Assembly: GCA_025558095.1 (NCBI GenBank) | Contig: JAIVFI010000018.1 | Location: 248,001-312,000, forward strand | Length of the DNA stretch: 64,000 nucleotides | From: Hyaloraphidium curvatum SAG 235-1 | Lineage: Eukaryota > Fungi > Monoblepharomycota | Reading direction: 5' to 3' | Shown: piece after piece, positions 12,156 through 30,041 of the stretch | Position numbering within the stretch: the stretch's first letter is position 1 | How the letters are laid out: each line of letters opens with the position of its first letter | Program-made: the position numbers and the translations under genes | Notes under the pieces: model-generated | What the model saw: only the letters and a program-made list of their open reading frames with translations | The model's database searches: none | Told to the model about the DNA's origin: nothing

Positions 12156-15008
12156 CTACACAACGGGCCTCTTTTCGCCATACCACCAGTTCCTCGGCGT
12201 CTCGGCCTGCGCGGGCACCGGCACCGGCACCGCATCGTGGTTCGGCTCCTCCGCCACCCCGTACCCCTGCCCCGCCCCGTACCCGTTCTGCGGCGGTGGC
12301 GACGCCGGCGACGTTGGCGCGGACAGCAAGGTGCCCGTGCCCCTGGGCCCGATCCACTCCCACGACTCGTGCGGCTCGCCGGCCACCATGACGTCGATCA
12401 CCCGCACGTTGGCGTTGTGCTCCACGTCCTTGCGGACCTTGAGCCAAATCCGGCGCACGTCCTGCACGCTGCCGACGTAGTACCGCCCGTCGTCGTGCTG
12501 CGGGAAAGGTCCCTGCCCGCGGCGGCTCCGGGGAGGCGCGACGTGGGTGATGTAGTAGTCCCGGAGCTGGTTGATGCTGACCGCCCCCTCCGAACCCCTG
12601 AGCACGTTGATCACGGCCTGCTGCAGGTCGACGACGAGCTCCCGCTCCTCCTCGGCGCGCTTCCTCTGGCTCCTGAAGCTGCTCAGGAACCACGACAGGC
12701 CCAGGAGCACGGCGACGAGGGCCAGCACGCGGTACCCGATCCTCCTCGCCCAGCAGCCCCACGACTCGATCGGCGCCGAGCTCGTCGCGATGGTCCCGTT
12801 GTCGTACGACAGCCGCGGGAAGTAGATCTTGCCTTCGTCGCCGCCGTCGGCGGCCGGCTGCGCCCTCAGCACCGCCCCGAAGTTCTCCCACGCGGCCTCG
12901 AGCTCAGACGGCGACACCGCGTCCGACCCCGCCTTTCCGCTGCCCGCTGCCATTTTCACCGCCTCCCACGCCTCCCGTTCCGGCATCCCGCTCCCCGTCG
13001 AGGCGGGCCGCGCCTCGCCGCACGCCACGCGCCCCCTGTGCTCCCTCGCCGCCTTCTCGGCCCGCTCCGCGATCCAGCTGACCACCCGGCTGCGCTTCCT
13101 GTCCGCGTCAATCTTGCGCGTGTCGAGCACGCACGCGGGCTGGTTCAGCGGGAAGGGCAGCACGTCGGCGGGGAGGGCCTTTTGCAGGAAGGTCTTCTCC
13201 TCGATGTGGTCCGGCGAGCAGCGCACCACCTTTTGCCGCTCGCAGACGGCGTTGGGCGGGCAGGCGATGACGGAGGGGAGCACGCGGTTGAGGGGGTTGG
13301 TCCTGGTCCAGCCCGGTGCGGCGGCGGCGGGGACGGCGGGGAGCGCGGGGATGTCGGGGAGGTTGGGCTCGTAACCGGAGAAGGTGTTGCGGTACCAGTC
13401 CGCGCCCATGAAGCCCGAGGTGCCGAGGAGCACGGCGAAGAGGACCGCGAGGGGGCCGCGGTAGGGGGAGGCCTCGGGCTGCGGGGCCGCCTTGCGCTTG
13501 GGCGGGCGTTCGGGGCCCAGCGAGATGCGCTTGCCCTCGCCCGTGGGCGAGCGGCGCGCGCTTTCCGTGGGGGACACGGGGAGCACCGCCGCCGGGCGCG
13601 ATGAGGATCCCGAGGAAGTCGAGATGGGCTGCACCTCCTTGCCGGCCGGCTTGACCTGCGGCCCCAGGCCGGCGAGCTTCTCCTTGAGAACCGGGATGGC
13701 CGCCTGCTGCTGCTTGAACTCGCTCAGCACGGGGTTGCGAGCCGCGCGCTCCTGCTCCTGCGCCTGCGCGAGGCGCTCGGCGGCGGGGCGGGAGCGGCGG
13801 GCGAGGGTCTCGGTGCCGGACCGCGCGGGCGGTGCGGGGGCGAACGAGGCGTCATAGACCGGCTGCGCGGGAGCGGGGACCGGGGCGGGAGCAGGGCGGG
13901 GTGCAGGAGCAGGAGCAGGAACGGGAGCGGGAGCCGGCTCCGGCACGAAGCGGGGAGGGGCCGAAACCGGGGCGGTGCGCACGGCCGTCGCCTCCATCGG
14001 CCTGCGCGGGGCCAGGACCGGCTCGCGGGCAGCCATGGGCGCAGGTGCGGGCACCGGCGCCTTGGCGGTCACCGCGGGGTGCGGCGCCGCGATCGGCGAG
14101 TCGACGTAGACCGGCGCGGGGGTGCTGAAGGCGAACGGCTGCGGCGGCGACTCGACGTACGGCACCCTCGCGGGGTCGGGCGTCGCAAACGCCGAGTCGG
14201 GCGTCCACTTCGGCAGCTGGTACTTTTCCTTGACGATCGGCGGCACGGCGGGGGTGAAGTGGTCGAGCGAGGGCGCAGCCGGGCCGGGCTGCTGCGCGGG
14301 GGTGCGCGGGGCCGAGCCGGGGCCGGGCAGCGACTTGCGCGGCTGGCCCTTGAGGCCCGCGACTGCGGGGTGCGGGGCGGGGGCGGGGCGAGCGGGCGAG
14401 GGGCGCTTGCGCGGGGCCGCCTCGTCCGCGCTGCCGCTCTCCGCGGTGCCCGCCCCGCTGCCCTCCGCGTCGGCGTCCGCCATGTCAACGTCGCCGCCCG
14501 CAAACGAGGCGTCGCCGGCGTGCGCCCGCTTGCGCTTGGGCGTCTTTGCGGGCGCCTTCTTTGCCTTGCCCGCGGGCGCCTTCTGCGGCGGCGACTGGAA
14601 CGGGTTCTCGTCCGAGAAGTGGTCCGCCAGCGGGTCGACCGGCGGGTCCGCGGCCTGCTCCTCGCTGATCTCCGCGCGGCGGCGCTTGCGGGGCTCCTCG
14701 GCGGCGGGCTCCCCTGCGGCCCCCGGCGGCGCCTCGCCGTCCGCCTTGCGCCGCTTCCCGCGCGACGCCATGCCCGGCGGCGTCATCGCCCGCTGCAGCC
14801 CGCGCCGCCGCTCCGCCAGCAGCGCCGCCCGCTTCGGCTCGAGGTGCGTCTCGAACAGCGCGACGTACTCCTCGCGCTTCAGCCGGGTCTGCGGCACGGG
14901 CACGTCGTTGGCCGCAAGCAGGCTGACCAGCTCGGCGATCTTGAGCTTCGCGACGTCGAACCCCTCGGCGAGCCAGTCCACGCGGCCGGGCGAGCCGGGG
15001 GACGCCAT
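12156..15008 (-). CDS. SRC1: Man1/Src1/Heh1 inner nuclear membrane protein (HEH/LEM plus Man1-Src1 C-terminal domain)
   Basis: FDVAKLKIAELVSLL HEH; FSDENPFQ; two TM helices; CPPNAVC; C-terminal IWLKVRKDVEHNANV..WEWIG. Confidence 0.9.
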   Translation of the reverse strand: MASPGSPGRVDWLAEGFDVAKLKIAELVSLLAANDVPVPQTRLKREEYVALFETHLEPKRAALLAERRRGLQRAMTPPGMASRGKRRKADGEAPPGAAGEPAAEEPRKRRRAEISEEQAADPPVDPLADHFSDENPFQSPPQKAPAGKAKKAPAKTPKRKRAHAGDASFAGGDVDMADADAEGSGAGTAESGSADEAAPRKRPSPARPAPAPHPAVAGLKGQPRKSLPGPGSAPRTPAQQPGPAAPSLDHFTPAVPPIVKEKYQLPKWTPDSAFATPDPARVPYVESPPQPFAFSTPAPVYVDSPIAAPHPAVTAKAPVPAPAPMAAREPVLAPRRPMEATAVRTAPVSAPPRFVPEPAPAPVPAPAPAPRPAPAPVPAPAQPVYDASFAPAPPARSGTETLARRSRPAAERLAQAQEQERAARNPVLSEFKQQQAAIPVLKEKLAGLGPQVKPAGKEVQPISTSSGSSSRPAAVLPVSPTESARRSPTGEGKRISLGPERPPKRKAAPQPEASPYRGPLAVLFAVLLGTSGFMGADWYRNTFSGYEPNLPDIPALPAVPAAAAPGWTRTNPLNRVLPSVIACPPNAVCERQKVVRCSPDHIEEKTFLQKALPADVLPFPLNQPACVLDTRKIDADRKRSRVVSWIAERAEKAAREHRGRVACGEARPASTGSGMPEREAWEAVKMAAGSGKAGSDAVSPSELEAAWENFGAVLRAQPAADGGDEGKIYFPRLSYDNGTIATSSAPIESWGCWARRIGYRVLALVAVLLGLSWFLSSFRSQRKRAEEERELVVDLQQAVINVLRGSEGAVSINQLRDYYITHVAPPRSRRGQGPFPQHDDGRYYVGSVQDVRRIWLKVRKDVEHNANVRVIDVMVAGEPHESWEWIGPRGTGTLLSAPTSPASPPPQNGYGAGQGYGVAEEPNHDAVPVPVPAQAETPRNWWYGEKRPVV

Positions 15009-15319
15009 GGTTGGGAGTGGAGTGGAGTTTGCGAGGTGACCACTCGGCATGGACGCGCGCCTTGAGCTTGCGGGCGGCACCTTGCGGAAACCCCGGACCG
15101 ATCCGGACCAGATTGACATCGCGCGGGCATTTTCGATTGAAAAAGAGCCGTCTAGAACCCCCCGAATTTCATCCCCGCCCGCGCGCCCCGGTTCGCCGCC
15201 CGCAAGGGTCCTCTTTGGTATCGACACAGAAGGTGTGGTATGGCGCGGGCCCCGCCCGCAAGATGCTGGTGTTTGCTGAAGATGACGTAGGTGGCGGATG
15301 GAAGGCGCCGGCTGCGGAT

Positions 15320-16652
15320 CTAGCGGCGCTTGAAGAGGTAGTGCACGATGCACCACTCGTTGCCTGCCGCCCCGACCGATCAGCACCACACCCTCCCCGG
15401 CAGGACGGAAAAACCCACCGGCGCTGTACCCGAAGAACTCGGCGCACGCGAGGTAGAACACGCGCCAGCGGTTCCACCACGCGTACCCGGCCGCCTGCGA
15501 GCCGTAGGTCTTGACCATGAGCGGCATGATCTCGGCGCGGTGGGCGTCCATGTTCTTGAGCCAGTCCTCCGAGGTCTTCTCTGGAGCGCAAACGGGGATC
15601 AGCAGGCGGAGAGAGGACGGCCGGGCAGCCGCGACCCACGGTAATGGGTGCCGTCGACGATCCACCTGTCCAGCACCTCGAGGTGCTCCTGGAACCACAG
15701 GAACAGGTCCGCCGAGGGCATCGTGCCCCCCGTGAAGAAGTACTTGGCCATCCACGAGTCGTCGTCGGCCGTGTCGTAGTCGTAGGCAAAGTGCTTGTGG
15801 GCAAAGATGTGCACAAAGAGGCGGCCGGTCTCGGGGACGAGCCAGGTGGAGACCTTGGCGAGGAGGGCGCGGTAGTTCTTCATGTGCTCGAACATCTCGA
15901 CCGAGATGATGCGGTCGAACCTGGAAGGGCGGAAGCGGGGTCAGCCTTCCGCCCGGGCCCGAACACCCCGCCCCGGCGCACGCACGTCTCGGTCTGCTCA
16001 AACACGTTGATGTCGCTCGTGATCACCCTCACGTTCCCGAACCCCCTGTCCCTGCACACGCCCTCGATATGCGCGCGCTGCGTCGCCGAGTTGGACAGGC
16101 TGGTGATCCGCGCGTTGGGGTACTTCTCGGCCAGGTACAGCGTGAGCGAGCCCCAGCCGCAGCCGAGGTCCATGATCTTCTGGCCGTCCTGCACGCCGGC
16201 CTTCTCGCAGTACGAGGCGAGCATGAGCTCCTCGGCTTCGTCGAGGGTGGTGGTGGCTGCCGGGGAGGGGTGGCATGAGCACCGGTCCGGCCGGGCGGAG
16301 CGCGGGGCCTCGGCGGCGACCGGGGACGCGCCGGCCCGACAACGAGGCGGGGAAACCCACGCGAGGTGTAGAGGCACGACGAGTACTTGAGCCTCTTCCC
16401 GAGGCACATCTTGAAGAACTCGGTCGGGAGCTCGTAGTGCTGCTCGTTGGCCTCCTTGGTGTGGATCGCGATGCTCGGCGTCTCCTTGAGCATCGCAAGG
16501 TAGCGCTTCTTGTCCTCGTCGTTGCGCACCAGCGAGCCCTGCTCCGACTGCGCGAGGCGGTCCCCGCACAGCTTGCGGATGCCGGCGCGGAGGAGGAAGT
16601 CGGGGAGGTAGCCCTTGTCGAGGAGCGGCTCGTAGATGGCGGCGAGGGACAT
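15320..16652 (-). CDS. CNMT-like (coclaurine N-methyltransferase / Cfa-related) SAM methyltransferase; multi-exon
   Basis: [23 protein letters not shown]; [12 protein letters not shown]; EMFEHMKNY; FFTGGTMPS; [14 protein letters not shown]. Confidence 0.9.
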
Positions 16653-17448
16653 GGCAGCGCGTCGGGCGGGCGGCGGACGGGCGGAGGAGGGCGATTGATG
16701 AGGGAGGTGGTGGGAGCGCCGGGGCGGGCGCGGGGTTTATGCGGGGATCGGAGCGGAGATGAGAGGTGGCTCGAACGCGGTCGGCTCCGGGGGTCAGGAC
16801 GGACCGAGCCCATTCACATGCCCGATCAGCAGCAGGGAGGATGCACCGGATTTGATTTTTCTACGTTACAGAAAGGCGATTCGGGGGAGGATGGCCGGAG
16901 TGCGGCGTCCGCTGCGTCCGATCGCGGTCCGAGAGGGCCAGCACCCCGATCGGCGCTGCATCTCGCGAAGACAAATGCCGTGGCGGCACGCGGACAACGA
17001 TCTGCGCCCTCCCAGAATGCGCAGGCCGCGGCGACACGGCGGATGCGGCAGGGGACGGCGGCTTTCAGTTGAGTGGGACCCGCGGCGGCCGCGGCCGCGT
17101 CGGGAGATTTCCACCCGCACATCCGATCAGACCCCAAAGACCGCGGAGATCCACGCGCGACACCGCACGCGTCCAACGCGGCCTGTGCGCGCATCGCTAG
17201 GCGACGGTCCAAACGGCGCCGACGCGGCGTGCCAGGGGTTCAGGGCTTTTGATCCGGGATCCCCCGAGGAGCCCGCTCGGGCCACGGTTTCGCCGGACGC
17301 TCGGGCCGTCCGCGAGCTTAATCGCGGTCGCCGGCCGCCGAACTCCGGCGACCCAACACCGCTCTCCGCGCACTCCCCCCGCGCCGCCCCGGAGCCTCCC
17401 CGCCGCGCCGCACACGGACCCCGACCCGCCCCATCCCGCCCGCGAAAG

Positions 17449-19194
17449 ATGTCGGCCGCCGTCGCGCCGCAGAGCAAGCAGCCCGCGGGCTCGCTGGCGG
17501 AGTACCTCCTCGACTCGGCTCCTGCTCGCCTCGCGGCCTCGGCTGGTGGGCTGCTCGCGCCCGATCCACCGTCCCCGCTGATCCCCCTCGCCAAACAGCC
17601 CGCTCCGCCGCCCTCGGCCTGCTCAGGTCGATGCGCAGCGGCCAGCTGACTCTGACCGACGAGACCGGCAAGCGCCACCACTTTGGCGTGCAGGGCGCGC
17701 CCATGAAGGCCAAGATGCGGGTGCTCCGCCCGGCCTTCTGGCTCCGCGTCGCGCTGTTCGACCACCTGGTGCGTTCGGGTCGTCTTGACTTGCGTCGGTG
17801 TCGGAGTTGACATAACACGCCCGTTGCCTGCCCATCTTGTTCCCCCTTCGCGATGTGCCGCGCGCCTCTCTCCCCGTCTGGCCCACCCGTGATCTCGCGC
17901 GCCCAGGGCTTCGGCGAGGCCTACATGTACGGCGACGTCCAGGTCGACGACCTCGGCGTCCTGCTCAAGGTGCCCATCCCCGCGTCGCTGGCCGATCTCG
18001 GTCGTCTCACCTCCATGGCCCTCCCAGATCTTTGCCCAGAACCGCGACGCCTTTGCCGACTTCCGCCTCCTCCCCCCCACCCTCGCCCGAGTCTTCGACC
18101 ACCTCTCGGTCCTCCAGTACATCGTCACCGTCCCCGCCAACACGATCTACAAGGCCATCACCAACGTCTCGGCGCACTACGACCTGGGCAACGACATGTT
18201 CCAGTCCTTCCTGGACCCGACCATGACCTACTCGTGCCCCATCTGGAAGACGGTCGACCCCGCCGACCGCGAGGAGGAGAGCCTGGAGAGCGCGTCGCTG
18301 CGCAAGCTCCACACCATGATCTCCAAGGCCCGCATCGGCCACGCCGACCACGTCCTCGAGATCGGCTCGGGTTGGGGCTCCATGGCCATCGAGGCCGTCA
18401 AGCAGACCGGGTGCAGGGTGACCACGCTCACGCTGTCGGTGGAGCAGAAGAAGCTCGCCGAGGAGCGCATCGCCGCCGCGGGGCTGTCGGACAGGATCAC
18501 GGTGCTGCTCAAGGACTACCGCGCCTTCGTCTCGGAGCACCTGGCCGCGGGCGGCAGGCCGTTCGACAGGCTGCTGTCGTGCGAGATGCTCGAGGCCGTC
18601 GGATTCGAGTTCCTGCCCACGTACTTCGACTGCGTGGACCGGATACTGGACAAGAAGCGCGGCGTGGCCTGCATCCAGTTCATCTCCATGCCCGAGAGCC
18701 GCTACGAGGAGTACCGCCGCACGACGGACTACATCCAGAAGCACATCTTCCCCGGTGGGTCCGCGCGCCGCCCTGGACGCCCCCGGCCTTGTTGATCCCG
18801 ACGCCTCCGCCAGGCGGCCACTGCCCTACCCCGACCGCCGTCATCGACGCCGTCTACAAGGGCTCCAAGGGCAACCTCATCGTCGAGGACCTCGAGAACA
18901 TCGGCGGGCACTACGCCAAGGCCCTGCGCATCTGGCGCGAGGAGTTTGTGCGCAACTTCGACAAGGTCGTCGCGGCCGCGGACGAGAAGCACAAGCGCAT
19001 CTACGACGACGTGTTCCGGAGGAAGTGGGAGTTCTGTGGGTCCTCCCCGGCTCCGCCAGCGGTACCGAGTCTCACCCACCCCGACAGACTTTGCCTACTG
19101 CGAGGCCGGCTTCGCCGCCAAGATCCTCGGTGACCACCACATCGTGCTCTGCCGCGAGGCCGACGACTCGCTCCTCTCGGGCATTCCCATGTGA
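17449..19194 (+). CDS. Cyclopropane-fatty-acyl-phospholipid synthase family methyltransferase (Cfa/UfaM/UfaA1 type); multi-exon
   Basis: GFGEAYMYGD; HYDLGNDMFQSFLDPTMTYSC; VLEIGSGWGS; SCEMLEAVG; YIQKHIFPGG; HYAKALRIW; YCEAGF. Confidence 0.93.
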
Positions 19195-19420
19195 TCGCCC
19201 CTTTGCTGCGAGCTGATTTATTCCCGAGGGCGGGACGGGACGGCAAAAGACCCGCGCGGGGGCGGTGCCGCGGGATACCACGACGCGATTTCGTTTAGAC
19301 CTGGGGCTCTATGAGGTCCGGCCGGCGGCCGGGGCCCTTCTTTTTCTCTGAGATGGTGTACATCCGCATCCCTTGATCTATGGCTTCAACTCGACAATAC
19401 TGCGCCCCCAGTCCACGCAA

Positions 19421-20928
19421 TCAGATGCCGCCAACCTTGCCCTCGACCGGCGATGCCGCCTCGGCAGGGGCGCCGGCCGCCAGCGGCTTCCGAGCCTTGA
19501 AGTAGTACATGGGGGTGAAGATCTGGGTCTCGCCCGAGCGCACGAGCGCGTGCGCGCCGACGTCCAGGAACTGGCTCACGGTGGTGGTGCCGGGGGGAGC
19601 GAGGCGGATGAGCTCGAGGAAGCGGGTGAGGTAGCTGGTCACGCTGGAGAAGAAGGGCAATGAGGCGCGATCGCGACGGTGCAGCGAGACGAAACCGACC
19701 TGCGGCCCCACGGTTGCCGGAGCCAGCCGATCGTGATCCCCTCAAGGGTCCAGAGGGCGCTCAGGTCCGTGGTCAGGGGCCAGTACCAGGGCCGCTTGTT
19801 CGTGGCCTTAACAATGTCGTGCTCGTAGGCCAGGTCGACGTCCTCGATGACCTCGAAGCCGACCTCGACGAGGCACTGCTTCCACTCCTCCGTCGTGTAC
19901 CATTTCGGGATCGAGTTGCCCGTCTGCGGCGTCACGAATCAGGCCAAACGCCCCGAAAGTGTCGCGCGCCGAGGAAACCAACCGCCAGCTCGTGCATGAT
20001 GTCGACGTGCTCCTTGTTGTTCGGGTCGTACTTGTCCGTCAGGCACCACTCGTACGCCGCGTACACGCCGCCGGGCTTCAGCACGCGGAAGATCTCCTTC
20101 ATGACGTCGCTCGGCCGGGGGGCGTGGCACGCGGCCTCGATCGAGTAGGCGGCGTCGAACTGCTCCGCCTCGAACGGCATGTCGAGGAAGTTGCCCTTGA
20201 CGGCGCGCGTGAGCCCGTCGAGGCCAAACTTCTTGCAGTAGTGGTTCACGCGCTCGACCTGGTGCCCGTTGAAGTTGATCCCCGTCACGTCGGCGCCCGA
20301 GAAGCGCGCCATCTCGCGGAGCGGGCCGCCGACGCCGCACCCCACGTCCAGGACCTTCATGCCGGGCACGAGCTCCAGCTTGTGGGCCAGGTACGTCTCG
20401 TGGCGCTTGACAGCCACCGACAGCGTGTCGCCCGCGTACATCCGGGCAAAGTGGAACGAGTCGCCCCAGGCTGCGGGGAAGGCGGGTTTAGGCGAGATTC
20501 CAAGAGCTGGGGATCACGGGAAGCTCACCGTACTCGTAGAAGTCGGTGACCTGGAAAGGAAGCAGAATCCGGCAGGGCATCTTTAGACATCTTTTCCAGC
20601 GGCGGACGACACCAAAGGGGCTCACCAGGTCGTAATACGCGCGGGTCAGCGTGTGCGCCGACTCGAGCCTCTTCTGCTCGTGCACATCGGCCACGCCCTC
20701 GCCGTTCTCGGCCTTGGCCCGCTTGAAGGCCTCCGAGTACTCCTGCGCCACGCGCTCGTGGGTCGCGCGGCTCTCCGCGTCCAGGTTCTTCTTGGCCATC
20801 TTCGAAATGAAGCTCGCCTCCGCGGCGTCCTTGGTGAAGTGGATCGCGCTCTTGGCGTCCGCCGCGCCGTTGGCGCGGCCGTTGGCGGCGGCGGCGCCGT
20901 TCTCCGTGGCAGGTGCGGTGGAGGCCAT
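19421..20928 (-). CDS. ERG6: Sterol 24-C-methyltransferase (ERG6/SMT family); multi-exon, with a 22-nt exon at 20529-20550
   Basis: YYDLVTDFYEYAWGDSFHF (spliced); LDVGCGVGGP; YSIEAACHAP; YEW; IFTPMY. Confidence 0.9.
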
Positions 20929-21447
20929 TGCGGGAGTGGAGAAGCGAAAGGAGGTGAGGTGTGCTTTCTGCGGAGCGCGCCCCGTGGGCCGAGTCCAGGC
21001 GCCCGAATTCGGCTGGTGATCGTCGCCCGTCCCCTGCCTCGAGAGAGCGGCGAAGAGAACGAGCGTTCAAAATACGTTCCGCTAGTCGATCTCAAGCTGC
21101 AGATGCCGCTTTGGCGTTGGATTGGTGTCGGGACGGGTCGGGTGGCGCCGGCAGTCCTAGGTAACCGTGCGAATCCTTCAAAGCCGCTCAAGCGGGCTCC
21201 GCATATGCAAGGACTTATATCAACACTATGGGATCAATGCTCTCGATGATGTTTGCCATCCGCTCTCTCCTCTTGTCCTGAGTGGTCTTGGCGCCTTGGC
21301 CGCGCCTGAGGCCGTGCCCTCGTGACCGAAGGTCGCCACAAACAGCTCAAACGCGCCCCCCCGGTTCTCGCGCCAAGGGTGCCTGCCGGACGGCCTGCTG
21401 CCGGTCCCTAGTGCATTTTGACTGGCTGCGCTACTGGGACCGGCGAG

Positions 21448-22654
21448 ATGGCTCTCGTGCTCGCGGGGAGGACCAGAGGAGGCAGACCGGCCGGGGCTCA
21501 GGCACCGGCGACGGTTGGCCTTCTGGACGTGCCAGGTGGGACTCTCGGTGCCAATCTCGTCTCTTGGTCCGCCATTGACCTTTTCTGCCCTTCTTTCCTG
21601 CTCGTGAATGCCACCGCGACGGGCCGAATCGCGTCCTCAACCCCCACCCACGTGCGGCGGACCGCGACGCGACGGCGACCTGTGCCAACATCCTTCCCAC
21701 GCCATGGCAGTCGAGATCATTTTCTCGGTCTTCTCTTTTCTTCCTCGGACCGAGGCCTTCCGGGTCCGCGGGGTGTGCAAGCTTATCGACTTCGTCGCGC
21801 ATTCCTACCTCTACTGGACGGACTGCTCGTTCGACGCCGCGTACCGGCAGCGCACCGGACCCCGTGTCTGCTACCGTATCAGGATCCAGCCGGGGGACGC
21901 CGTCCTACGCCGCGTTTTCGAGGCGTGTGGAAAGGCCGTCAGGCGTGTCAAGGTGCACGCCGTAACGGACCAGCAGCTCTTTGCGACCATGCTGGCCAGT
22001 GGACGCAACCTGCGGAGCCTGCATCTGGGGGCTCTGTCGACGCCGGCCGTTCTGGCGCTCTTTGCGGCGTTGGAGACGGCTTCGTCCGACGGTAGCACGC
22101 ACCTGACGGGCGTTGCCGAGCTGCATGTCGTTGCCACCCCTGCACAGCGCGATCCCGCAGCCCCCGACGCTCCACTTTCGCTAATCGCACGGGTCTTCCC
22201 GAATCTCAAGGCTCTCCACCTGCTGCTCCACTCGACGCTTGAGCCTGGTGACGTGGCATCCCTCACCGGGCTCCACCACCTCGTGGAGCTCTCGCTCGCC
22301 AACTGCGATCAGCTCTCGTCGGCGCACCTGTCGCCTTCGCCCTTCCCTGGCCTGCGGTACCTGTTCCTGTCGCACCTACGTTCGTTCCGCGACGAGGACG
22401 TCCTGCATTTGCCGGCCGGCCTGAGCCTGCTCGCGCTCCACGGCGGCCGATTCCTCACGGACGACATGGTTCCGCACCTGGGTCGCTTCCGCGAGCTGGA
22501 GTGGTTCAAGGTGCTCGCGTGCCCGGGGCTCTCGCTCGCCGCCTTTGATCCTCTCGAAGCGTTCGAACCCGCTCTGGGATGCCCCATGGTGCACTCGTGC
22601 GTCGGACGGTCGGGTGGTCTTGGGATGGCCTTCAGGAGGCGTGGTCCTGTCTAG
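21448..22654 (+). CDS. F-box / leucine-rich-repeat protein; intron 21536-21710
   Basis: Spliced LLDVP|VEIIFSVFSFLP..VRGVCK F-box; LRRs such as FPNLKALHL and LVELSLANCDQLS. Confidence 0.8.
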
Positions 22655-22846
22655 TGTCCTAAAGCGGAAGTGCGCTTTATCGATCTGAAACGCAATGAGC
22701 GACTGCGACAACATCGAGGAATGAACGACCTTGGGAAACGACATGTAAAGGACACAGAGACACGAATGTAGATCTAGACCTGATCTGACACTAAGTAATA
22801 TTTCATCTTTCTGAGAAGTCGAGCCTAAGGCAGCTGCGCCGAGCGA

Positions 22847-23195
22847 GCTCGCCGTTTCGCACCGCCGCCCGAAGCGTCCGCCTGGGGTGATTGCACGGCG
22901 AACTCCCCGGCATCCACAAAGGGCAACAGGCGGATCGCGGCGTAGTGCCGACTGAGACTGAAATGTTAGGGTTGCACGGAGGACAGATGGTCCTCTATTG
23001 TGTTGGGGCGGCTCAGAGGAGGGGCCCGTCCCCCGCAGCCACGAAAACACCCGCCGCACTTCACACATCGAATCATCGGCGAAAAGGGCCACAAAATGGG
23101 GAAATGAGCCGGACGGATGAGTTGAAAAATGAGCAGTGGTCAGAAAACGAAAAAGAGCAAAACAGGCGACGGAGTGTTTCGATCACTCGACGTTT
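22847..23195. repeat. Left arm of a 349-bp inverted repeat
   Basis: Reverse complement of 24208-24556; the mirrored ORF translations differ at only 4 residues. Confidence 0.95.
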
Positions 23196-23235
23196 GGGTT
23201 ATGAGCCCAACACTCTTCCACTGAGCTACGTCGCG
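23164..23235 (-). tRNA. Initiator tRNA-Met(CAT)-like gene, 72 nt, with atypical C1:C72 and U73 (possible pseudo-tRNA)
   Basis: CGCGACG-TA-GCTCAGTGGAAGAGTG-TTGGG-CTCATAA-CCCAA-ACGTC-GAGTG-ATCGAAA-CACTC-CGTCGCC-T; three consecutive G:C anticodon-stem pairs and A54/A60 as in eukaryotic initiators; followed by T-runs. Confidence 0.8.
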
Positions 23236-23499
23236 CGGTATATCGCTGGTTAGCCCGTCCGGGGCCTGATGGCGCGCGTCCGCCCGCCCCCCCAGTCTCC
23301 CACGCCCCGATCCCGGCCGCGGCCCCGCGCTGGCCGCGGATCGCCGAGCGCAATAGTAACTGGGATGCCGGACTCAAGCGCTTCCCGCTGGACGCACCGT
23401 TTTCGTCCGTTTCCGCTGGACCGGTCGACGAGTTTGAGTGACGCTTGGGCCGTTTTTGCGTCACCACCGACACCACCGGCCGAGACGCCCACCACAATT

Positions 23500-24180
23500 A
23501 TGTCTTCGCAGTCGTCACCGCGCACGCCCTGGCCATCCGCTTATGGCTCTGGCGGCGGAGCGTCCTCAACATCGACGCCCGCGCGTTCCGGCGGGGGCCC
23601 TGCCGCGAGTACCCCCTCCTCTCCCGGGGAGGCATTCGTCAACGCGGTGGCGGCGCAGGTGGCGGACAACCCGGAGACCGCAGCTCGATTGCGGTTAGGC
23701 GGCTACGAGTACAACCTACGGCAGAAGCGCGAGCGGCGTGCCGGCCAGCTCCGCGAAGCCATCGCGGAGCGGAAGCGCCAACTCGAGCCTTTTGTCGCCG
23801 AGAAGAAGGACGCCTTCGCGCGGTACGCTGCCGAGGTTAAGAGGGGTCCGGTGCCTGGCGCTTCCGCTGTGGAGGAGCTCGAGCGCGTCGTGTGGGCTTT
23901 CGAGGACGCGGTCTCCCTGCAACGCACGCCGGACGCCGTCTTCCAGGCGCTGTTCCGGACCAACCCCGACGCCGCCGAGCGCTATCTTGCCATGGCGCGC
24001 GATCCGGTCACGAGCGACGTAGGATCGTTGCCCTGCTTCGTGCTGGAGCTCAAGCCCGGTGCGGAGGAGATGCTGGGTCAGTGGATGCGCGACCGGGGCC
24101 TCGATGGCTCCGCGAATTGGGACGTTCCTCGGGTCGTGGCCGGCACGGACGTCCCGCACGAGAGCTGCTGTACACCGTGA
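23500..24180 (+). CDS. Orphan intronless ORF between the inverted repeats (ORF open from 23269)
   Basis: Long ORF with plausible helical content; no transposase motif recognised. Confidence 0.55.
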   Translation: MSSQSSPRTPWPSAYGSGGGASSTSTPARSGGGPAASTPSSPGEAFVNAVAAQVADNPETAARLRLGGYEYNLRQKRERRAGQLREAIAERKRQLEPFVAEKKDAFARYAAEVKRGPVPGASAVEELERVVWAFEDAVSLQRTPDAVFQALFRTNPDAAERYLAMARDPVTSDVGSLPCFVLELKPGAEEMLGQWMRDRGLDGSANWDVPRVVAGTDVPHESCCTP

Positions 24181-24207
24181 GGGCCCGGATGTCGCGGCGA
24201 AACCGCT

Positions 24208-24556
24208 AAACGTCGAGTGATCGAAACACTCCGTCGCCTGTTTTGCTCTTTTTCGTTTTCTGACCACTGCTCATTTTTCCACTCATCCGTCCGGCTCATT
24301 TCCCCATTTTGTGGCCCTTTTCGCCGATGATTCGATGCGTGAAGTGCGGCGGGTGTTTTCGTGGCTGCGGGGGACGGGCCCCTCCTCTGAGCGCCCCCAA
24401 CACAATAGAGGACCATCTGTCCTCCGTGCAACCCTAACATTTCAGTCTCAGTCGGCACTACGCCGCGATTCGCCTGTTGCCCTTTGTGGATGCCGGGGAG
24501 TTCGCCGTGCAATCACCCCAGGCGGACGCTTCGGGCGGCGGTGCGAAACGGCGAGC
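24208..24556. repeat. Right arm of the 349-bp inverted repeat; begins with the 3' half of the tRNA
   Basis: aaacgtcgagtgatcgaaacactccgtcgcctgttttgctctttttc... mirrors 23195 down to 22847. Confidence 0.95.
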
Positions 24557-24796
24557 ACGCCTCGCTCGGCGACGCATCACTGGCCGACGCCTCGAAATCA
24601 GCCGCTGCTCTTCTTGGTGGAGCTAGACGGAACCCAGGGACAACTCCTCCCTAAGGCGCGAGGATGATGTCGTGTCCCTCAATCGATTAGCAGACTGCTC
24701 CGTCGATCGCGTCGACTCGCCGCGCAAAGCGACGCGTTGCTGCTGACAGGCCTGTCTCTGGACCCAGAAGGCCCGCATTCATTCCATCGGAAAACG

Positions 24797-25874
24797 ATGA
24801 TGGCGGACGCGGGCGACGGCCGCGACGAGGAACGCGTTTCCGTCGCGGAGGACGACGGAGACCCGGCCTGGGTTACCGACGACGGGGAGGGCGACGATGC
24901 GCAGGAATCCCCCGAGGACGACGAGGAGAACGAGGACGAAGCGGGAGAGGAAGAGGAGGAAGAGGAAGACGGGGAGGAGGACGACGGAGACGGGCTCCCG
25001 GCGCCGTCGCAGGAACTCAAGTCCATGTCCCTCAACTTCCCGCTCACCCAGGCCCGGCTCGTCCAGCTCGCCGCGGACTCCGTACCTCGAGAGCCTGGAC
25101 ATCAGGCCCGACTACGCCGGCAGCGCCCCCACGCTCTCGTTCGGCGACGTCTCGTTCCGCAGGCTGCGGACCCTCTCGGTGCAGCAGCCGCTGACGGACA
25201 TCTTCTTCGTCAAGGAGCATTACCCGGCCATGGAAAGCATCTTTTTGGAGCAGTACAGGTCCGGGGGCATCCACATGGACCTCCCCAGTGCGTATACAGC
25301 CCGGCCCGAGGGACTGCAGCGCTGACGCGGACCCCCGCAGGGCTGACGTACTTCTCCGCGCAGCACTGGATGGTCGACGACCCGCACGGCTTCGGGCCGT
25401 CCCTCAGCCGCTGTCCGAAGCTCGAGACAGTCAACTGCTACAAGCTCTGGGGCCTCGGTTCGTCCGACCCGTCCCTCGTCCCGATCGTGCCCTCACGCAG
25501 CACTCGCAGGCGTCGGTTCCAGGAGCCGCGGCCACCGCCTCGCCCTCCCCTCGCTCGAGGAGCTGGACCTGTACCGCTCCGACGACCTGGGCTTCCTCGA
25601 GATCTGGGCGCCGCGGCTGCGCAAGCTGAACCTGCAGGCGTGCTACGGCATCGAACGCGTGGACGTGCTGGGTGCGCCGCCCGAGGGGTACGCGGACTAC
25701 GTGAAGCTGGCGCCGCAGAAGGCGTCGAGGTACATCGTCAACTTCATCAACACGAGCGTGCCGGCGGGGAACGTCGTCAGGAACCCGAGGTGCCGGAAGG
25801 TGTTTGCCAACGACGAGGACGACGAGTTTGGGGACGGGTCCGCGGCGCTCCAGGAGGCGTGGATGCTCGCGTGA
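24797..25874 (+). pseudogene. LRR-like protein with acidic N-terminus; apparent frameshift near 25073 (pseudogene or assembly error)
   Basis: PYLESLDI, CPKLETVNCYKLWGL, LEELDLYRSDDL, APRLRKLNLQAC; frames switch at ctcgccgcggactccgtac with no good intron. Confidence 0.55.
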
Positions 25875-25986
25875 AGCGGGGCTCGGGTGTGTTTGCCGTG
25901 GTCGGATCGGCATGTCGTTCTATGTATCATTTGGCATCGTGGATGGGTATTGCGCCAGCATGCGACATCGATGGCGGACCGCCCAA

Positions 25987-27654
25987 TCACCCGGCCCACC
26001 CCACCTCCCTCGCCGCCTTCTCGAACGCCTCCCACCTCCCCCCCTCCCTGGCCATCAGATCTTCCCTCCCCCCCGTCCCGTCCGCCTTCCCCATCTCTCC
26101 CCTCCTGTACCCCGCGATCCGCACGCACACGGCGTGCGACGACGTGTCCCACGCCCAGTTGGTCCCGAACACGGACTCGAGGTTGTACCGCGAGAGGAGC
26201 GCGCCGGCGGCCGAGAGGAGGAGGGAGAGGCCGCGCGGCGGGGACGGGGGCCGGGCGAGACCAGGGGTGGGGGAGGGGAAGAGCGGGGTCGAGGGCCAGA
26301 GCTTCGAGGCGAGGCGGGAGGCGAGGCCGGTTGGTAAAGGGGAGGGGGAGGGGTCGAGCAGCGCGCGCAGGACCGCGGCGGGTTCCCCGTCCCAGTCCCC
26401 GCGGGCGAAGCCGAACGCCCACGCCTCGAGGGGGTCGCGGCCGGCGGCGGCGTGCAGCGCGAGCTCGTCGCCGAACTCGGGGGAGCGGAGGACGATCTTG
26501 GGCGCACCCGCTGGGGCGGCGAACGCGTGTTCGGTGTCCCAGTCGCGCTCGACGGCGAGGCCGCGCGATTCGAGCCAGGTTTCGAACCACCCGCGCTCGC
26601 CGCCGGAGACCCAGCGCAGCGTGCCGCGCTTCCGGCCGTCGCGGAGGGGAACGGGTCGGCCAAAGACGGCCAGGCCGCGGGCGTAGTGCAGCGCCCAGGC
26701 CTCCCAAAGGATGCGGGGGAAGGTGAGGAAGGCGGCCAGGGGGAGCATGAGCAGGGCGCGGAGGAGCGACCAAGACGTCAGCTCCGTCGCGGAGGTCGTC
26801 CACAAGCGGGCGTGGAGGTGCTTCTTGTGGGTGAGAGGGAGGTCGGGGAGGTCGGGCAGCTTGGTCGGCTCGGGGACCGACGCCTCCGGGGCCGGCAGCT
26901 CCGCGATCGGCGCCCAGTGCGAGATGGCGACGTCGGCCTTCATGGAAAGGAGGGGATCGCGCACCTGGAAGGCGTACAGGCCGGTGCGCGGGCTGAAGGG
27001 GGAGACGTGAAAGGTCCGCGGCAGGATGTGCGCGTGCGTGTACCTAAGAGGTGGGGGCGGTGCTGTCAGTGATCCCGTCGGACGAGCTGGATCGCGGTCA
27101 CCCCACCCCTTCCGGATCAGCGTCTTCGTGCCCTCGCCCCCCGGACCGTGATCCAGCACGTAGAGGAATCGCTCGCCAAAAGTGTTGTTGACCTCGGCCA
27201 CCGTGCACCTGAGCTTGGGCGCCTCCCCGCCCGCGGCAGCGGAGTAGCAGAACCACACGTTGAGCGGGTTGAAGGCCACGCCGAACACGCGCGGCATGGT
27301 GAAGAGCAGCAGCGGGCCTGCGATCTCCGCGGGCGGGATGCCCCCGACGCGTGCTGCGGCCCACTCGAGGCGTGCCCGCATGCCGCCCCTGCCGGGCACC
27401 TCTGCCAGGTAGTCCTCCTCGCGCACCTCGACGACGGGCGGCAGCCACGGGCGGTCCCCGGCTGCCCGGCAGCCGAAGAGGGGGAATGCGGGGGAGCGGG
27501 CGGGGTTGCGGGCGTCGAGGGCGTCGACGTCGAGCAGCAGGTGGAACAAGTCGTAGCGGAACGAGTGGCCGGTCGGCAGCAGCCGCGCGTGCGCCGTGCG
27601 CGTGAAGTGCAGCGTGTGGCCGCGGCCGATCGCGGTGTCGGCGGCGGTCGCCAT
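25987..27654 (-). CDS. DUF1365 family protein (UfaO-like) with C-terminal extension; one short intron near 27045-27102
   Basis: HARLLPTGHSFRY; TMPRVFGVAFNPLNVWFCY; AEVNNTFGERFLY; FHVSPF; PRILWEAWALH. Confidence 0.9.
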   Translation of the reverse strand: MATAADTAIGRGHTLHFTRTAHARLLPTGHSFRYDLFHLLLDVDALDARNPARSPAFPLFGCRAAGDRPWLPPVVEVREEDYLAEVPGRGGMRARLEWAAARVGGIPPAEIAGPLLLFTMPRVFGVAFNPLNVWFCYSAAAGGEAPKLRCTVAEVNNTFGERFLYVLDHGPGGEGTKTLIRKGWGDRDPARPTGSLTAPPPPLRYTHAHILPRTFHVSPFSPRTGLYAFQVRDPLLSMKADVAISHWAPIAELPAPEASVPEPTKLPDLPDLPLTHKKHLHARLWTTSATELTSWSLLRALLMLPLAAFLTFPRILWEAWALHYARGLAVFGRPVPLRDGRKRGTLRWVSGGERGWFETWLESRGLAVERDWDTEHAFAAPAGAPKIVLRSPEFGDELALHAAAGRDPLEAWAFGFARGDWDGEPAAVLRALLDPSPSPLPTGLASRLASKLWPSTPLFPSPTPGLARPPSPPRGLSLLLSAAGALLSRYNLESVFGTNWAWDTSSHAVCVRIAGYRRGEMGKADGTGGREDLMAREGGRWEAFEKAAREVGWAG

Positions 27655-28045
27655 CGGGTCCTCTCGGTGGATCACGCGGTGCGGGGAATCCGGGAAGGGG
27701 GGCCGCCGAACTCCGTCTGCGCGGGAGCCGCTCGGGGACGCCGGCCCGGGCGCGATGACTCTTGGCGCGCTCAGGCCGCGCCGGATTAGTCACTTTCGGC
27801 GCTCGGGCCGTGTTCGGATTAGAGGCGGGATCGCCGCATGAATGTGCTCCGACTCCCGACATCCGCCGCTGATCCGGATCCCAACTCCGCGGTACGCTGC
27901 CCGACGGCATCGCGCGCCCTAATCCCGCATTCTAATTGCCTGCATTTTGCAGACCGTTTCCCGCTCGGCCGCAGCCCGCCTTCTGCGGTTGACTGCCTCC
28001 CCCGCCGGTTGGCACGAGCACCGCTTCCTCCACCCGATCCCCGCA

Positions 28046-30041
28046 ATGCCCGCACGCTCCGGGGCCGCACGCCGCGTGGCCGTCGTCGGCTCCGGCGTCG
28101 CCTCGATGGGCGCCGTGTGGTGCCTGACACGCCACCCGGACGTGCTCGTCGACATCTTCGAGGCCGGCTCGTACCCCGGCGGGCACACCCACACCGTCTA
28201 CATAGAGAGCCTGGAGGTCTGCGAAAAGGCAGCAAAGGCAGCCAACGGCCATGCAAATGGCCACGCCAACGGCCACGCGAACGGCCACGCCAACGGCCAC
28301 GCCAAGCCCGCCGGCGCCCCCAAGCCCGCCCTGGTCACCGACGTCCCCGCCACGCCGACGCAGCTCCCCGTCGACACCGGCTTCATCGTCATGAACCCCG
28401 TCACCTACCCCAACTTCCTGGCCTTCCTCGCCCACCTGCACGTGCGCACCGTGCCCTCGGACATGTCCTTCGCCGTGTCGCGGCGCGCCCCGGAGAAGCC
28501 GCTGGAGCCCGTGCTCGAGTGGGCTGGCGCGGGGCTCAGGACGCTGTTTGCGGACTGGAGGAACCTGTGGGTCGGGGGCGGCGGGATGTGGAGGCTGGCG
28601 CTCGACGCGTGGAAGTTTGGCGAGGAGGCCGAGGAGATGGTGCGCAAGGGCGAGATGGAGAGGTTCGACGACGACGGCAAGTTCGTCGGCAAGCAGGGCT
28701 GGACGCCCAAGGAAGGTGCGTGTCGTCTCTAGCGGTGCCCGGCATCCCGCCAGCGGCAGATCACTGATCTCTCCCTCCCCTCAAGATGTCGCGATCGGCG
28801 ACTTTTTCAAGTCGCGCCCCTACTCCACCTTCTTCTACGAGAACTACATCCTCCCCATGACCGCCGCCATCTGGTCCACCCCCGCCGAGGAGGTCTACGA
28901 CGGCTTCCCCTTCGACACCCTCGTCCGCTTCATGCGCAACCACAAGCTGCTCGAGCTGGGCGAACGGCCGCAGGTGCGCCGCCCTCCGACCTCCCCCACC
29001 GGCTTCGTGCTGACCTCCCGCGCCCCCGTTCAGTGGCTCACGGTCGAGAACGGCTCGCGCTCCTACGTCTCCGCCGTCCTCTCGCAGCTCCCCTCCACGC
29101 AGCGCCTGCACCTCAACACCGCCATCCGCTCGCTCCGCCGGGAGCGCCGCGGCTCGGCGTGGGAGGTGTTCCTCACCGACGCCTCGGGCAAGGAGTGGGG
29201 GCCCTACGACGCCGTGGTGATGGGGTGCCACGGGGACCAGGCGCTCGAGATCCTGGGGGAGCAGGCGACCGAGGACGAGAGGAGGGTGCTGGGGAGGGTG
29301 GCGTTCACCAAGAACCGCTGCGTGCTGCACCGTGATCCCAGGGTGCGTCGATCTCGGGCCTTCCATTCCGGTCGCGATCGGTGCTGAAACCCCCGCCTGC
29401 AGCTCATGCCCGCCAACAAGCTCTGCTGGTCCTCGTGGAACTACCTCACCCTCTCCCCCACCGGCGCGGAGAAAAAGTCGACCTCCATGTGCCTCACCTA
29501 CTGGATGAACAAGCTGCAGCCCTTCCTGGACCCCGCCACGCACGGCGACGTCTTCGTGACCGTCAACCCGTTCGTCGAGCCCGAGGGCAAGCTCGGCGAG
29601 TGGACGTACGAGCACCCGAGGCTCGACGCGGGGCTGGTGGCGAGCCAGGAGGAGATCAACGCGGTGCAGAACAAAGCGGGGGTGGTGTTTGCCGGCGCGT
29701 GGACCAACTACGGCTTCCACGGTGGGTTCCGAGCCATCTCGTTCCGCGCCGAGAGCTGATGAAGAGCTTCCGCCGCAGAGGACGGCATCACCTCCTCGCT
29801 CCTCGCCGCCTCGTCGATCGGCTTCCCGCCGCCGTTCCCCGTGCACATGAATGGGGGATACCCGACCCACCGCAAGCCGTACCCGCCCGCGGCGGGCGTC
29901 GACCCGATCGTGGTGGCGCCGCCCAACTACACCCGCAACACGGAGCGGAAGAAGGCCGGGTCGGTGTCGTGGGGCGCGTGGGGGGCGGGCAAGGTGGCGG
30001 GCGGGATCGGGTGGGCGCTGGGCAAGGCGGCCGGGTTCTGA
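28046..30041 (+). CDS. COG2907-type NAD/FAD-binding flavin oxidoreductase (UfaD-like); multi-exon
   Basis: VAVVGSGVAS; FEAGSYPGGHTHTV; VDTGFIVMNPVTYPNF; SDMSFAVS; YILPMTAAIWS; WSSWNY; LTYWMNKLQ; YEHP; GAWTNYGFH..GITS. Confidence 0.92.
28241..28300 (+). repeat. 5 x 12-bp coding tandem repeat (ANGH)5
   Basis: gccaacggccat gcaaatggccac gccaacggccac gcgaacggccac gccaacggccac. Confidence 0.9.

Follow-up and report, generated by a model that had tools for sequence, protein, structure and literature searches.

The genome of Hyaloraphidium curvatum SAG 235-1, an early-diverging fungus (monoblepharid, of chytrid grade), comprises 31.9 Mb in 55 contigs (58-72% G+C). We analyzed 64,000 nucleotides of contig JAIVFI010000018.1 (positions 248,001 to 312,000, forward strand), hereafter called the window and numbered from its first letter, which contain four intact genes related to those of a bacterial operon for furan fatty acids. 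The four genes lie within 15 kb and make up two head-to-head pairs with about 6.8 kb between them, the partners of each pair being located on opposite strands. The first pair consists of a gene for a CNMT-like methyltransferase (-) and a Cfa-like gene (+), the second of a DUF1365 gene (-) and a gene for a flavoprotein (+). An earlier note on this DNA had described these genes, together with one for a sterol methyltransferase, as a candidate cluster of five genes within 15 kb, and each of the five was located exactly where the note had placed it. Its description of the genes stands; the arrangement is amended to two divergent pairs on opposite strands with unrelated genes and a repeat between them. 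The gene models were deduced from open reading frames, database proteins (P0001, P0075 and P0195) and transcript contigs:

15320-16652, minus strand: CNMT-like (FufM/LIME-like) S-adenosylmethionine methyltransferase, 349 aa (model P0195); exon cores 16359-16652, 15988-16254, 15641-15922 and 15414-15581, then a short last exon with the stop near 15320
16653-17448: intergenic region of the CNMT-like and Cfa-like genes, a candidate bidirectional promoter judging by gene orientation
17449-19194, plus strand: putative fatty-acyl methyltransferase of the Cfa family (UfaM-like), 461 aa, several short introns (model P0075)
25987-27654, minus strand: DUF1365 (UfaO-like) protein, 534 aa, one intron (model P0001)
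27655-28045: intergenic region of the DUF1365 and flavoprotein genes, 391 nt from start codon to start codon
28046-30041, plus strand: flavoprotein of the amine-oxidase/desaturase superfamily (UfaD-like; transcript contig, NAD_binding_8 match), five exons, 28046-28712, 28783-28970, 29031-29341, 29402-29720 and 29778-30041

Spliced transcript contigs of run X1 cover the DUF1365 and flavoprotein pair. They skip the 63-nt intron of the DUF1365 gene (27042-27104) as well as the four introns of the flavoprotein gene (28713-28782, 28971-29030, 29342-29401 and 29721-29777), all of which are bounded by GT..AG on the coding strand. Thus, both genes are transcribed and processed, and these five introns bear out the view that the cluster is made up of spliced eukaryotic genes. 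Between the two genes the contigs leave only positions 27831-27901 uncovered (the last position covered before the gap is 27830, the first one after it 27902), which fits a compact bidirectional promoter; contig ends were not taken as proven transcript ends, nor was depth used as expression level. The two intergenic regions have a 15-mer (17333-17347 and 27701-27715) and a 10-mer (17274-17283, 17298-17307 and 27800-27809) in common, and within the window both words are confined to these two regions. Only one out of 301 control windows shared as much with the first intergenic region. We regard the common words as a lead to a possible co-regulation of the two pairs.

The four proteins

The H. 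curvatum protein P0075 is 100% identical to the window's Cfa-like gene across the main exon. It scored 218 bits against the Pfam family CMAS (PF02353; cut-off 27), whose matches reside at 18151-18762 and 18810-19010, and its closest solved structures in a search of the PDB are bacterial Cfa enzymes. P0075 stayed far below the cut-offs that NCBIfam sets for equivalogs of true cyclopropane synthases (196.7 versus 400 for NF008686, 235.7 versus 600 for NF053839), and for none of the four proteins did NCBIfam provide a specific model. When aligned on Escherichia coli Cfa, the window protein retains Cys139, Glu239, Ile268 and Tyr317, while it possesses Gln at the position of His266. All 11 fungal enzymes examined have the same Gln, as do 61 of the 63 bacterial ones that are linked to the operon. 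His266 and the four other aligned positions are presumably bicarbonate ligands of E. coli Cfa. Judged by the alignment, the exchange appears to set the operon type apart from canonical Cfa; a tie to a different fate of the carbocation intermediate would be speculation.

The genome contains another gene of the CMAS family, on contig C12 (379485-380900; L088:1917-3390, minus strand), whose product exhibits two hydrophobic N-terminal stretches before the methyltransferase domain. Mts1-type C9-methyltransferase, reported by Ternes in 2006, is said to carry membrane-spanning helices on the N-terminal side of its CMAS domain, and by its domain layout the C12 gene likely encodes the sphingolipid C9-methyltransferase of H. 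curvatum. A search of the ESM Atlas with the N-terminal part of its product was uninformative (scores 0.83). By inspection, no hydrophobic N-terminal stretches were seen in P0075. Since its N-terminus is hydrophilic and its fungal orthologues have been automatically named 'Tuberculostearic acid methyltransferase UfaA1' and not after the Swiss-Prot C9-methyltransferases, sphingolipid C9-methylation was rejected as the activity of the window gene.

The DUF1365 match at 25987-27654 is the sole one that the profile search found in the genome. The match of the protein to PF07103 scored 173 bits and spans positions 3-234 of the profile (length 235); profile searches thus confirmed both the CMAS and the DUF1365 assignment made earlier. 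The best database match of the open reading frame is P0001 of H. curvatum, with 100% query coverage and 96% identity, the latter value falling short of 100% because of the one in-frame intron. Residues 1-345 represent the DUF1365 domain, which has kept all 12 residues found to be invariant across 58 fungal and bacterial sequences (P130, E154, N157, T158, F159, E161, V196, S197, P198, Y206, I294 and A298). Beyond it there is a C-terminal extension of about 190 aa (25990-26649, minus strand), which gave no Pfam match. It can be aligned with the C-terminal regions of chytrid homologues, with which it shares the stretch '(F/Y)V(R/K)GD(W/F)', and bacterial DUF1365 proteins do without it. An AlphaFold model of the domain, based on an alignment of 58 rows, reached a predicted local distance difference test (pLDDT) value of 80.9 and a predicted template modeling (pTM) score of 0.82, and predicts mostly beta strands and a C-terminal helical pair. 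A PDB sequence search with the protein yielded nothing, and Foldseek yielded no match to the model at E 0.001 or better. VIA-align related the model to calycin-like barrels, namely the phycobilin lyase CpeS, the oligomycin spirocyclase OlmO and nitrobindin, with Z values of 5.2-5.6, which are below the level that shows kinship. The predicted fold is compatible with a barrel for hydrophobic ligands, and we take this as a lead.

While the other three proteins were searched as P0001, P0075 and P0195, the flavoprotein was searched exon by exon. Its Rossmann motif was recognized by NAD_binding_8 (PF13450; 34.7 bits, 28082-28264), and the PDB matches were confined to this motif of amine oxidases and desaturases. 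PF01593 (Amino_oxidase) gave no match to the window exons searched singly, and is present in the full-length orthologue of Chytridiales sp. JEL 0842. Directly after the Rossmann motif, exon 1 harbors a low-complexity insert, (NGHA)x5, at approximately 28244-28303 of the plus strand.

P0195 is 100% identical to exon 2 of the CNMT-like gene. Two exons of this gene each gave 87-91 bits with the plant coclaurine N-methyltransferase 6gkv and 30-36 bits with E. coli Cfa, and homologues in Psilocybe bear the name (S)-coclaurine N-methyltransferase. FufM, the bacterial enzyme of interest here, is reported to share 38% identity with the CNMT-like protein AT4G33110 of Arabidopsis (PMC10940516). By sequence similarity, the fourth gene is assigned to the CNMT/LIME-like branch of the CMAS superfamily.

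Bacterial operons and phylogeny

Bacterial counterparts were collected by scanning one genome per species for the conserved DUF1365 motifs. This gave 596 confirmed stretches, the best 80 of which were kept as loci and 79 scored; Rhodopseudomonas and Cereibacter are not among the 80. In these best 80 of 596 stretches, the order flavoprotein-DUF1365-Cfa on one strand is nearly universal. The trio is complete in 60 of the 79 loci, 46 of them with separate open reading frames and 14 with a single open frame for DUF1365 plus Cfa, and most of the incomplete loci are cut by contig ends. Exon 1 of the window flavoprotein matched the open reading frame directly upstream of DUF1365 in about 70 of the 79 loci (32-89 bits). 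True fusions of DUF1365 and Cfa, with contiguous domains, occur in approximately 15 loci (including L008, L010, L012, L014, L015, L018, L019, L022, L025, L028, L029, L030, L048 and L076). Such fusions are classic evidence of a joint action of both proteins. In line with the earlier note, the window trio is homologous to the three genes of a bacterial operon, which proved to be very widespread.

A CNMT-like methyltransferase was encoded at most 8 kb from the operon in 18 of the 79 loci, where all four window exons were matched with summed scores of 209-310 bits. This agrees with the report that homologues of FufM are present only in a subset of the organisms bearing the trio (Lemke 2020, PMC7380195). 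Hence, all four window genes have counterparts at the level of the operon, and their homology to the bacterial furan fatty acid operon, the fourth gene included, is strongly supported by the sequence comparisons.

Quick maximum-likelihood trees were calculated by short searches with support values from the Shimodaira-Hasegawa-like approximate likelihood ratio test (SH-aLRT). In the Cfa tree (88 Cfa-family sequences), 19 fungal proteins fell into one clade (support 100), whose internal order tracks taxonomy, with chytrids followed by Zoopagomycota with Basidiobolus and then by Ascomycota. The fungal clade is nested (96-98) among operon-linked or fused enzymes of Acidobacteriota, Chloroflexota, Thermodesulfobacteriota, Lentisphaerota, Kiritimatiellota and others. 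A proteobacterial operon clade of 37 rows is separate from it, and E. coli Cfa is located outside all 81. The DUF1365 tree (80 rows) gave a congruent picture, in which the fungi (96) join Acidobacteriota, Dehalococcoidia and the fused types (97) as opposed to 44 proteobacterial rows. Both fungal proteins thus group with the operon-linked forms and not with E. coli Cfa. The congruence of the trees suggests that the genes for Cfa and DUF1365 were inherited together and early in fungi.

Linkage in other fungi and neighboring genes

Each of the divergent pairs recurs in relatives. Chytridiales sp. JEL 0842 has its genes for the flavoprotein and DUF1365 in divergent orientation at a distance of 380 nt, and all five window exons of the flavoprotein were matched. 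The Logan contig L007, whose DUF1365 is 41% identical, likewise contains a divergent flavoprotein/DUF1365 pair, with matches to flavoprotein exons 1-2. For the other pair, the Logan contig L090 (Cfa 74-91% identical) disclosed the succession HeH/MSC gene, CNMT-like (-), Cfa (+) and sterol methyltransferase (-). A metagenome contig of the JGI (Cfa approximately 72% identical) begins in the same way, with HeH/MSC, CNMT-like (-) and Cfa (+), which are followed by TatD and others, and after another 8.5 kb, where the stretch examined ends, a flavoprotein is encoded. Thus, both pairs have been conserved as units within the Hyaloraphidium lineage and among some of the chytrids. The CNMT-like gene, which is adjacent to the operon in 18 bacterial loci and accompanies Cfa in relatives, was rightly counted to the cluster. 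With regard to synteny of the trio across relatives, what recurs are the two divergent pairs; no linkage was seen in Dikarya or in two further chytrids. According to database matches, all four families persist across fungi in dispersed form, and Agaricomycetes possess CNMT-like as well as DUF1365 genes. In Chytridiales sp. JEL 0842, a DUF1295 gene (L001:20004-20979, minus strand) is located 8 kb from the flavoprotein/DUF1365 pair; we take this family to be a companion of Cfa-type operons in bacteria.

The surroundings of the two pairs contain the following features:

12159-15100, minus strand: long gene for an HeH/MSC-domain (Src1/Man1-like) inner-nuclear-membrane protein, downstream of the CNMT-like gene
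19421-20928, minus strand: sterol methyltransferase (ERG6/SMT type), Sterol_MT_C match
21608-22651 and approximately 24780-25871, plus strand: two F-box/LRR-like genes between the pairs, without evident tie to the lipid genes
22843-23195 and 24208-24560: pair of 353-nt inverted repeats, arms 98% complementary
23254-24177: open frame of 308 codons, of unknown family, inside the 1,012 nt flanked by the repeat arms

As the HeH/MSC gene is a neighbor also in L090 and in the metagenome relative, local synteny reaches past the lipid genes. The sterol methyltransferase gene is convergent with the Cfa-like gene at a distance of about 230 nt. The genome contains two Sterol_MT_C genes, this one and another at C21:211994-212155. 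The window gene adjoins Cfa in L090, the closest relative, but not in the relative with the approximately 72% identical Cfa. In view of the paralogue pair and the non-conserved position, we dismissed this gene as a member of the pathway and withdrew it from the cluster to which the earlier note had assigned it. In Arabidopsis, SMT1 is a protein of lipid droplets (PMC12712439).

The region between the pairs (21.6-25.9 kb) is occupied by three unrelated genes, two of the LRR type and one unknown, and by the inverted repeat. The three genes are bystanders. The two arms are the only copies of the repeat in the genome; they may have arisen by a local inverted duplication or delimit an invertible segment.

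Proposed pathway and comparison with known systems

Furan fatty acids are potent scavengers of radicals and singlet oxygen, which are found in plants, algae and fungi and reach fish and humans via the diet. The activity that defines UfaM-type enzymes is the formation of 11-methyl-12-trans-18:1 from phospholipid vaccenate. To our knowledge, biosynthesis of furan fatty acids has been proven in two alphaproteobacteria only. In Cereibacter sphaeroides the pathway comprises UfaM (RSP2144), UfaD (RSP1091) and UfaO (RSP1090) (Lemke 2020, PMC7380195); the UniProt number of the UfaM reference protein is Q3J4I7 (PMC10940516). In Rhodopseudomonas palustris, the adjacent genes RPA2569-2571 (ufaM-ufaO-ufaD) suffice for the synthesis of 9M5, and FufM (RPA0924) adds a second methyl group, giving 9D5 (PMC7380195). 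Both UfaD and UfaO depend on O2 (PMC7380195).

The chemistry, substrate, product and role proposed in the following are drawn by analogy with these two bacteria. They start from the gene models, the transcription and splicing of one pair, the family assignments, the operon homology, the congruent trees and the pairing in relatives, which were established directly. In the first step, the Cfa-like enzyme would methylate the double bond of an unsaturated acyl chain, bound in phospholipids or residing in lipid droplets, and thereby form a methyl-branched trans-alkene and not a cyclopropane. The UfaD-like flavoprotein would then convert this product with O2 to a conjugated methyl-diene. The UfaO-like DUF1365 protein would insert one oxygen atom from O2 and close the furan ring, resulting in a monomethyl compound of the 9M5 type, to which the FufM-like CNMT enzyme would attach the second ring methyl (9D5 type). 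The product may scavenge singlet oxygen and radicals in a sacrificial manner. On balance, we consider it somewhat probable that the four genes constitute such a lipid-modification module, i.e., a fungal counterpart of the flavoprotein-DUF1365-Cfa operon plus a second methyltransferase, which makes a furan fatty acid.

Several points weigh against this interpretation. We know of no eukaryotic member of the four families with demonstrated activity, and cis-vaccenate, the substrate in bacteria, is not a typical major fatty acid of fungi. The two pairs are split by unrelated genes, and what speaks for their co-regulation is a few common words. In Zopfochytrium, Fimicolochytrium, Mycena, Paraphaeosphaeria and Fusarium, no partner gene was found within 10 kb of DUF1365. 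The bacterial loci had been chosen by their similarity to the fungal DUF1365 protein. Furthermore, E. coli Cfa was the sole canonical Cfa in the tree, and both trees were calculated without UfaM, UfaD, UfaO and FufM, operon linkage standing in for membership in a clade of these proteins. Finally, the nearest bacterial relatives come from Thermodesulfobacteriota, Dehalococcoidia, Kiritimatiellota and Lentisphaerota, which are largely anaerobic. The fusions of DUF1365 and Cfa, too, occur in mostly anaerobic lineages, an odd setting given that two downstream steps depend on O2.

With relatives rich in anaerobes on the one hand and two O2-dependent steps on the other, the product of the operon may therefore differ between clades. 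Accepting this, the four genes could still act jointly on acyl chains, with the DUF1365 protein doing something else than furan closure and with an end product that is not a furan but, for instance, a methyl-branched, methylene, conjugated-diene or cyclopropane/cyclopropene fatty acid. We consider this explanation unlikely, though by no means far-fetched. Function has been established for two alphaproteobacterial systems only (PMC7380195), and the fungal proteins cluster with another subgroup of bacteria, largely from anaerobe-rich lineages in which the O2 chemistry is doubtful; yet the DUF1365 protein of the window retains all family-invariant residues, and the presence of a fourth, FufM-like enzyme is best understood if its substrate is a furan. 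Cyclopropane synthases of Sterculia, according to a passage in PMC4067076 in which they are cited, are fusions of the same flavoprotein and Cfa domains, and the window protein has kept Glu, Tyr and Ile at the catalytic positions of Cfa. A plain cyclopropane synthase, however, does not agree well with the exchange of His for Gln at the bicarbonate site of Cfa and with the missed equivalog cut-offs. Moreover, 9D5 does occur in fungi, as it was purified from wild meadow mushrooms according to the part of PMC10558370 that refers to Muller 2022.

That ordinary lipid enzymes of unlinked function came to lie side by side by chance is improbable in our view. The three unrelated genes and the inverted repeat between the pairs, and the lack of linkage in Dikarya, Zopfochytrium and Fimicolochytrium, would be in accordance with it, but each divergent pair is conserved in relatives, the flavoprotein is again encoded less than 10 kb from the Cfa pair in the metagenome relative, and bacteria have these families in operons or as fusion proteins. 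The Cfa-like enzyme might in this case be engaged in, e.g., C9-methylation of sphingolipids, as fungi possess CMAS-family enzymes of this activity (PMC10282164); it is the C12 gene, though, and not P0075, that specifies the expected N-terminal hydrophobic helices, and the orthologues of P0075 have names of the UfaA1 type. A pathway of the tuberculostearic acid (10-methyl) type, in which the methyltransferase makes a methylene intermediate that the flavoprotein reduces, is hinted at by the automatic UfaA1 name of the fungal P0075 orthologues and was rejected as very improbable, since the proven bfaAB pairs the methyltransferase with a different 'FAD oxidase' (BfaA; FAD, flavin adenine dinucleotide) and is called distinct from ufaA1 by its authors (PMC7791843), the window flavoprotein is of the type preceding DUF1365 in operons, and neither DUF1365 nor the CNMT-like enzyme would have a role.

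Returning to the furan fatty acid module, a wider scenario can be put forward tentatively, which we deem possible but would not count on. The module would represent a eukaryotic route to methylated furan fatty acids, derived from a bacterial operon that was acquired en bloc by an early fungal ancestor, and the Hyaloraphidium lineage together with a few chytrids would be the only fungi to have kept the cluster. If so, dispersed copies of the four genes would explain 9D5 in mushrooms, and homologues in plants and algae would account for the furan fatty acids passed along the food chain to fish and humans. The locus suggests an explanation in terms of genes for the dimethyl furan fatty acid of mushrooms. 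With four cDNAs defined by their introns, furan fatty acid synthesis in a eukaryote becomes directly testable, and Gln at the His266 position is a signature that may separate enzymes forming methyl-alkenes from those forming cyclopropanes. Should the product not be a furan, the genes would still represent a conserved, uncharacterized system of lipid modification ranging from chytrids to Dikarya.

In the literature searched, we found no description of fungal Ufa-like genes or of a eukaryotic cluster. In this respect the novelty claimed for the locus holds; eukaryotic homologues as such, however, had already been described (PMC7380195, PMC10940516), the former work (Lemke 2020) noting that DUF1365 occurs in Eukarya and predicting eukaryotic homologues. 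R. palustris and C. sphaeroides possess the same four families as the window, i.e., CMAS, an amine-oxidase-type flavoprotein, DUF1365 and a CNMT-like protein. In contrast to the co-linear operon of R. palustris, the window contains spliced genes in two divergent pairs. Compared via the operon-linked proxies, the fungal proteins belong to a non-proteobacterial, often fused subgroup, and the window DUF1365 protein is distinguished by its additional C-terminal extension; the activities of the window proteins are predicted.

E. coli Cfa (b1661; PDB 6bqc) has the CMAS fold and the N-terminal lipid-binding region in common with the Cfa-like protein of the window, but its gene lacks a DUF1365 or flavoprotein partner. 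The actinomycete proteins BfaA and BfaB, like the window proteins, combine a flavoenzyme and a CMAS methyltransferase acting on a phospholipid acyl chain, whereas their operon contains neither DUF1365 nor a CNMT-like gene and BfaA is a different FAD oxidase (PMC7791843).

Arabidopsis encodes members of the same families, AtUFAMD1 (AT3G23510), AtUFAO1 (AT1G30130) and LIME1/AtFUFM1 (AT4G33110), which have been proposed for furan fatty acids by homology. The homologues, including the CNMT-like LIME1, were named on the grounds of homology and localization to lipid droplets (Omata 2024, PMC10940516), and a root proteome of 2025 confirmed this localization, function not having been tested there (PMC12712439). 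In plants, the flavoprotein and Cfa domains are fused into one protein and the genes dispersed, the evidence being co-localization on lipid droplets as opposed to the physical clustering in the window. In Chlamydomonas, CFA1, CFA2/CPLD27 (annotated as coclaurine N-methyltransferase) and the DUF1365 gene Cre06.g269300 belong to the same families and behave as one unit, whose SAK1-dependent induction by singlet oxygen was reported by Wakao in 2014 (PMC4067076); these genes are linked by co-expression and not by genomic clustering. Clustering is a kind of evidence that is independent of both the co-localization in Arabidopsis and the co-induction in Chlamydomonas. The locus of H. curvatum thus adds to a known type of pathway a new member, which is fungal and physically clustered and whose product, by analogy with the bacterial systems, is probably a furan fatty acid.

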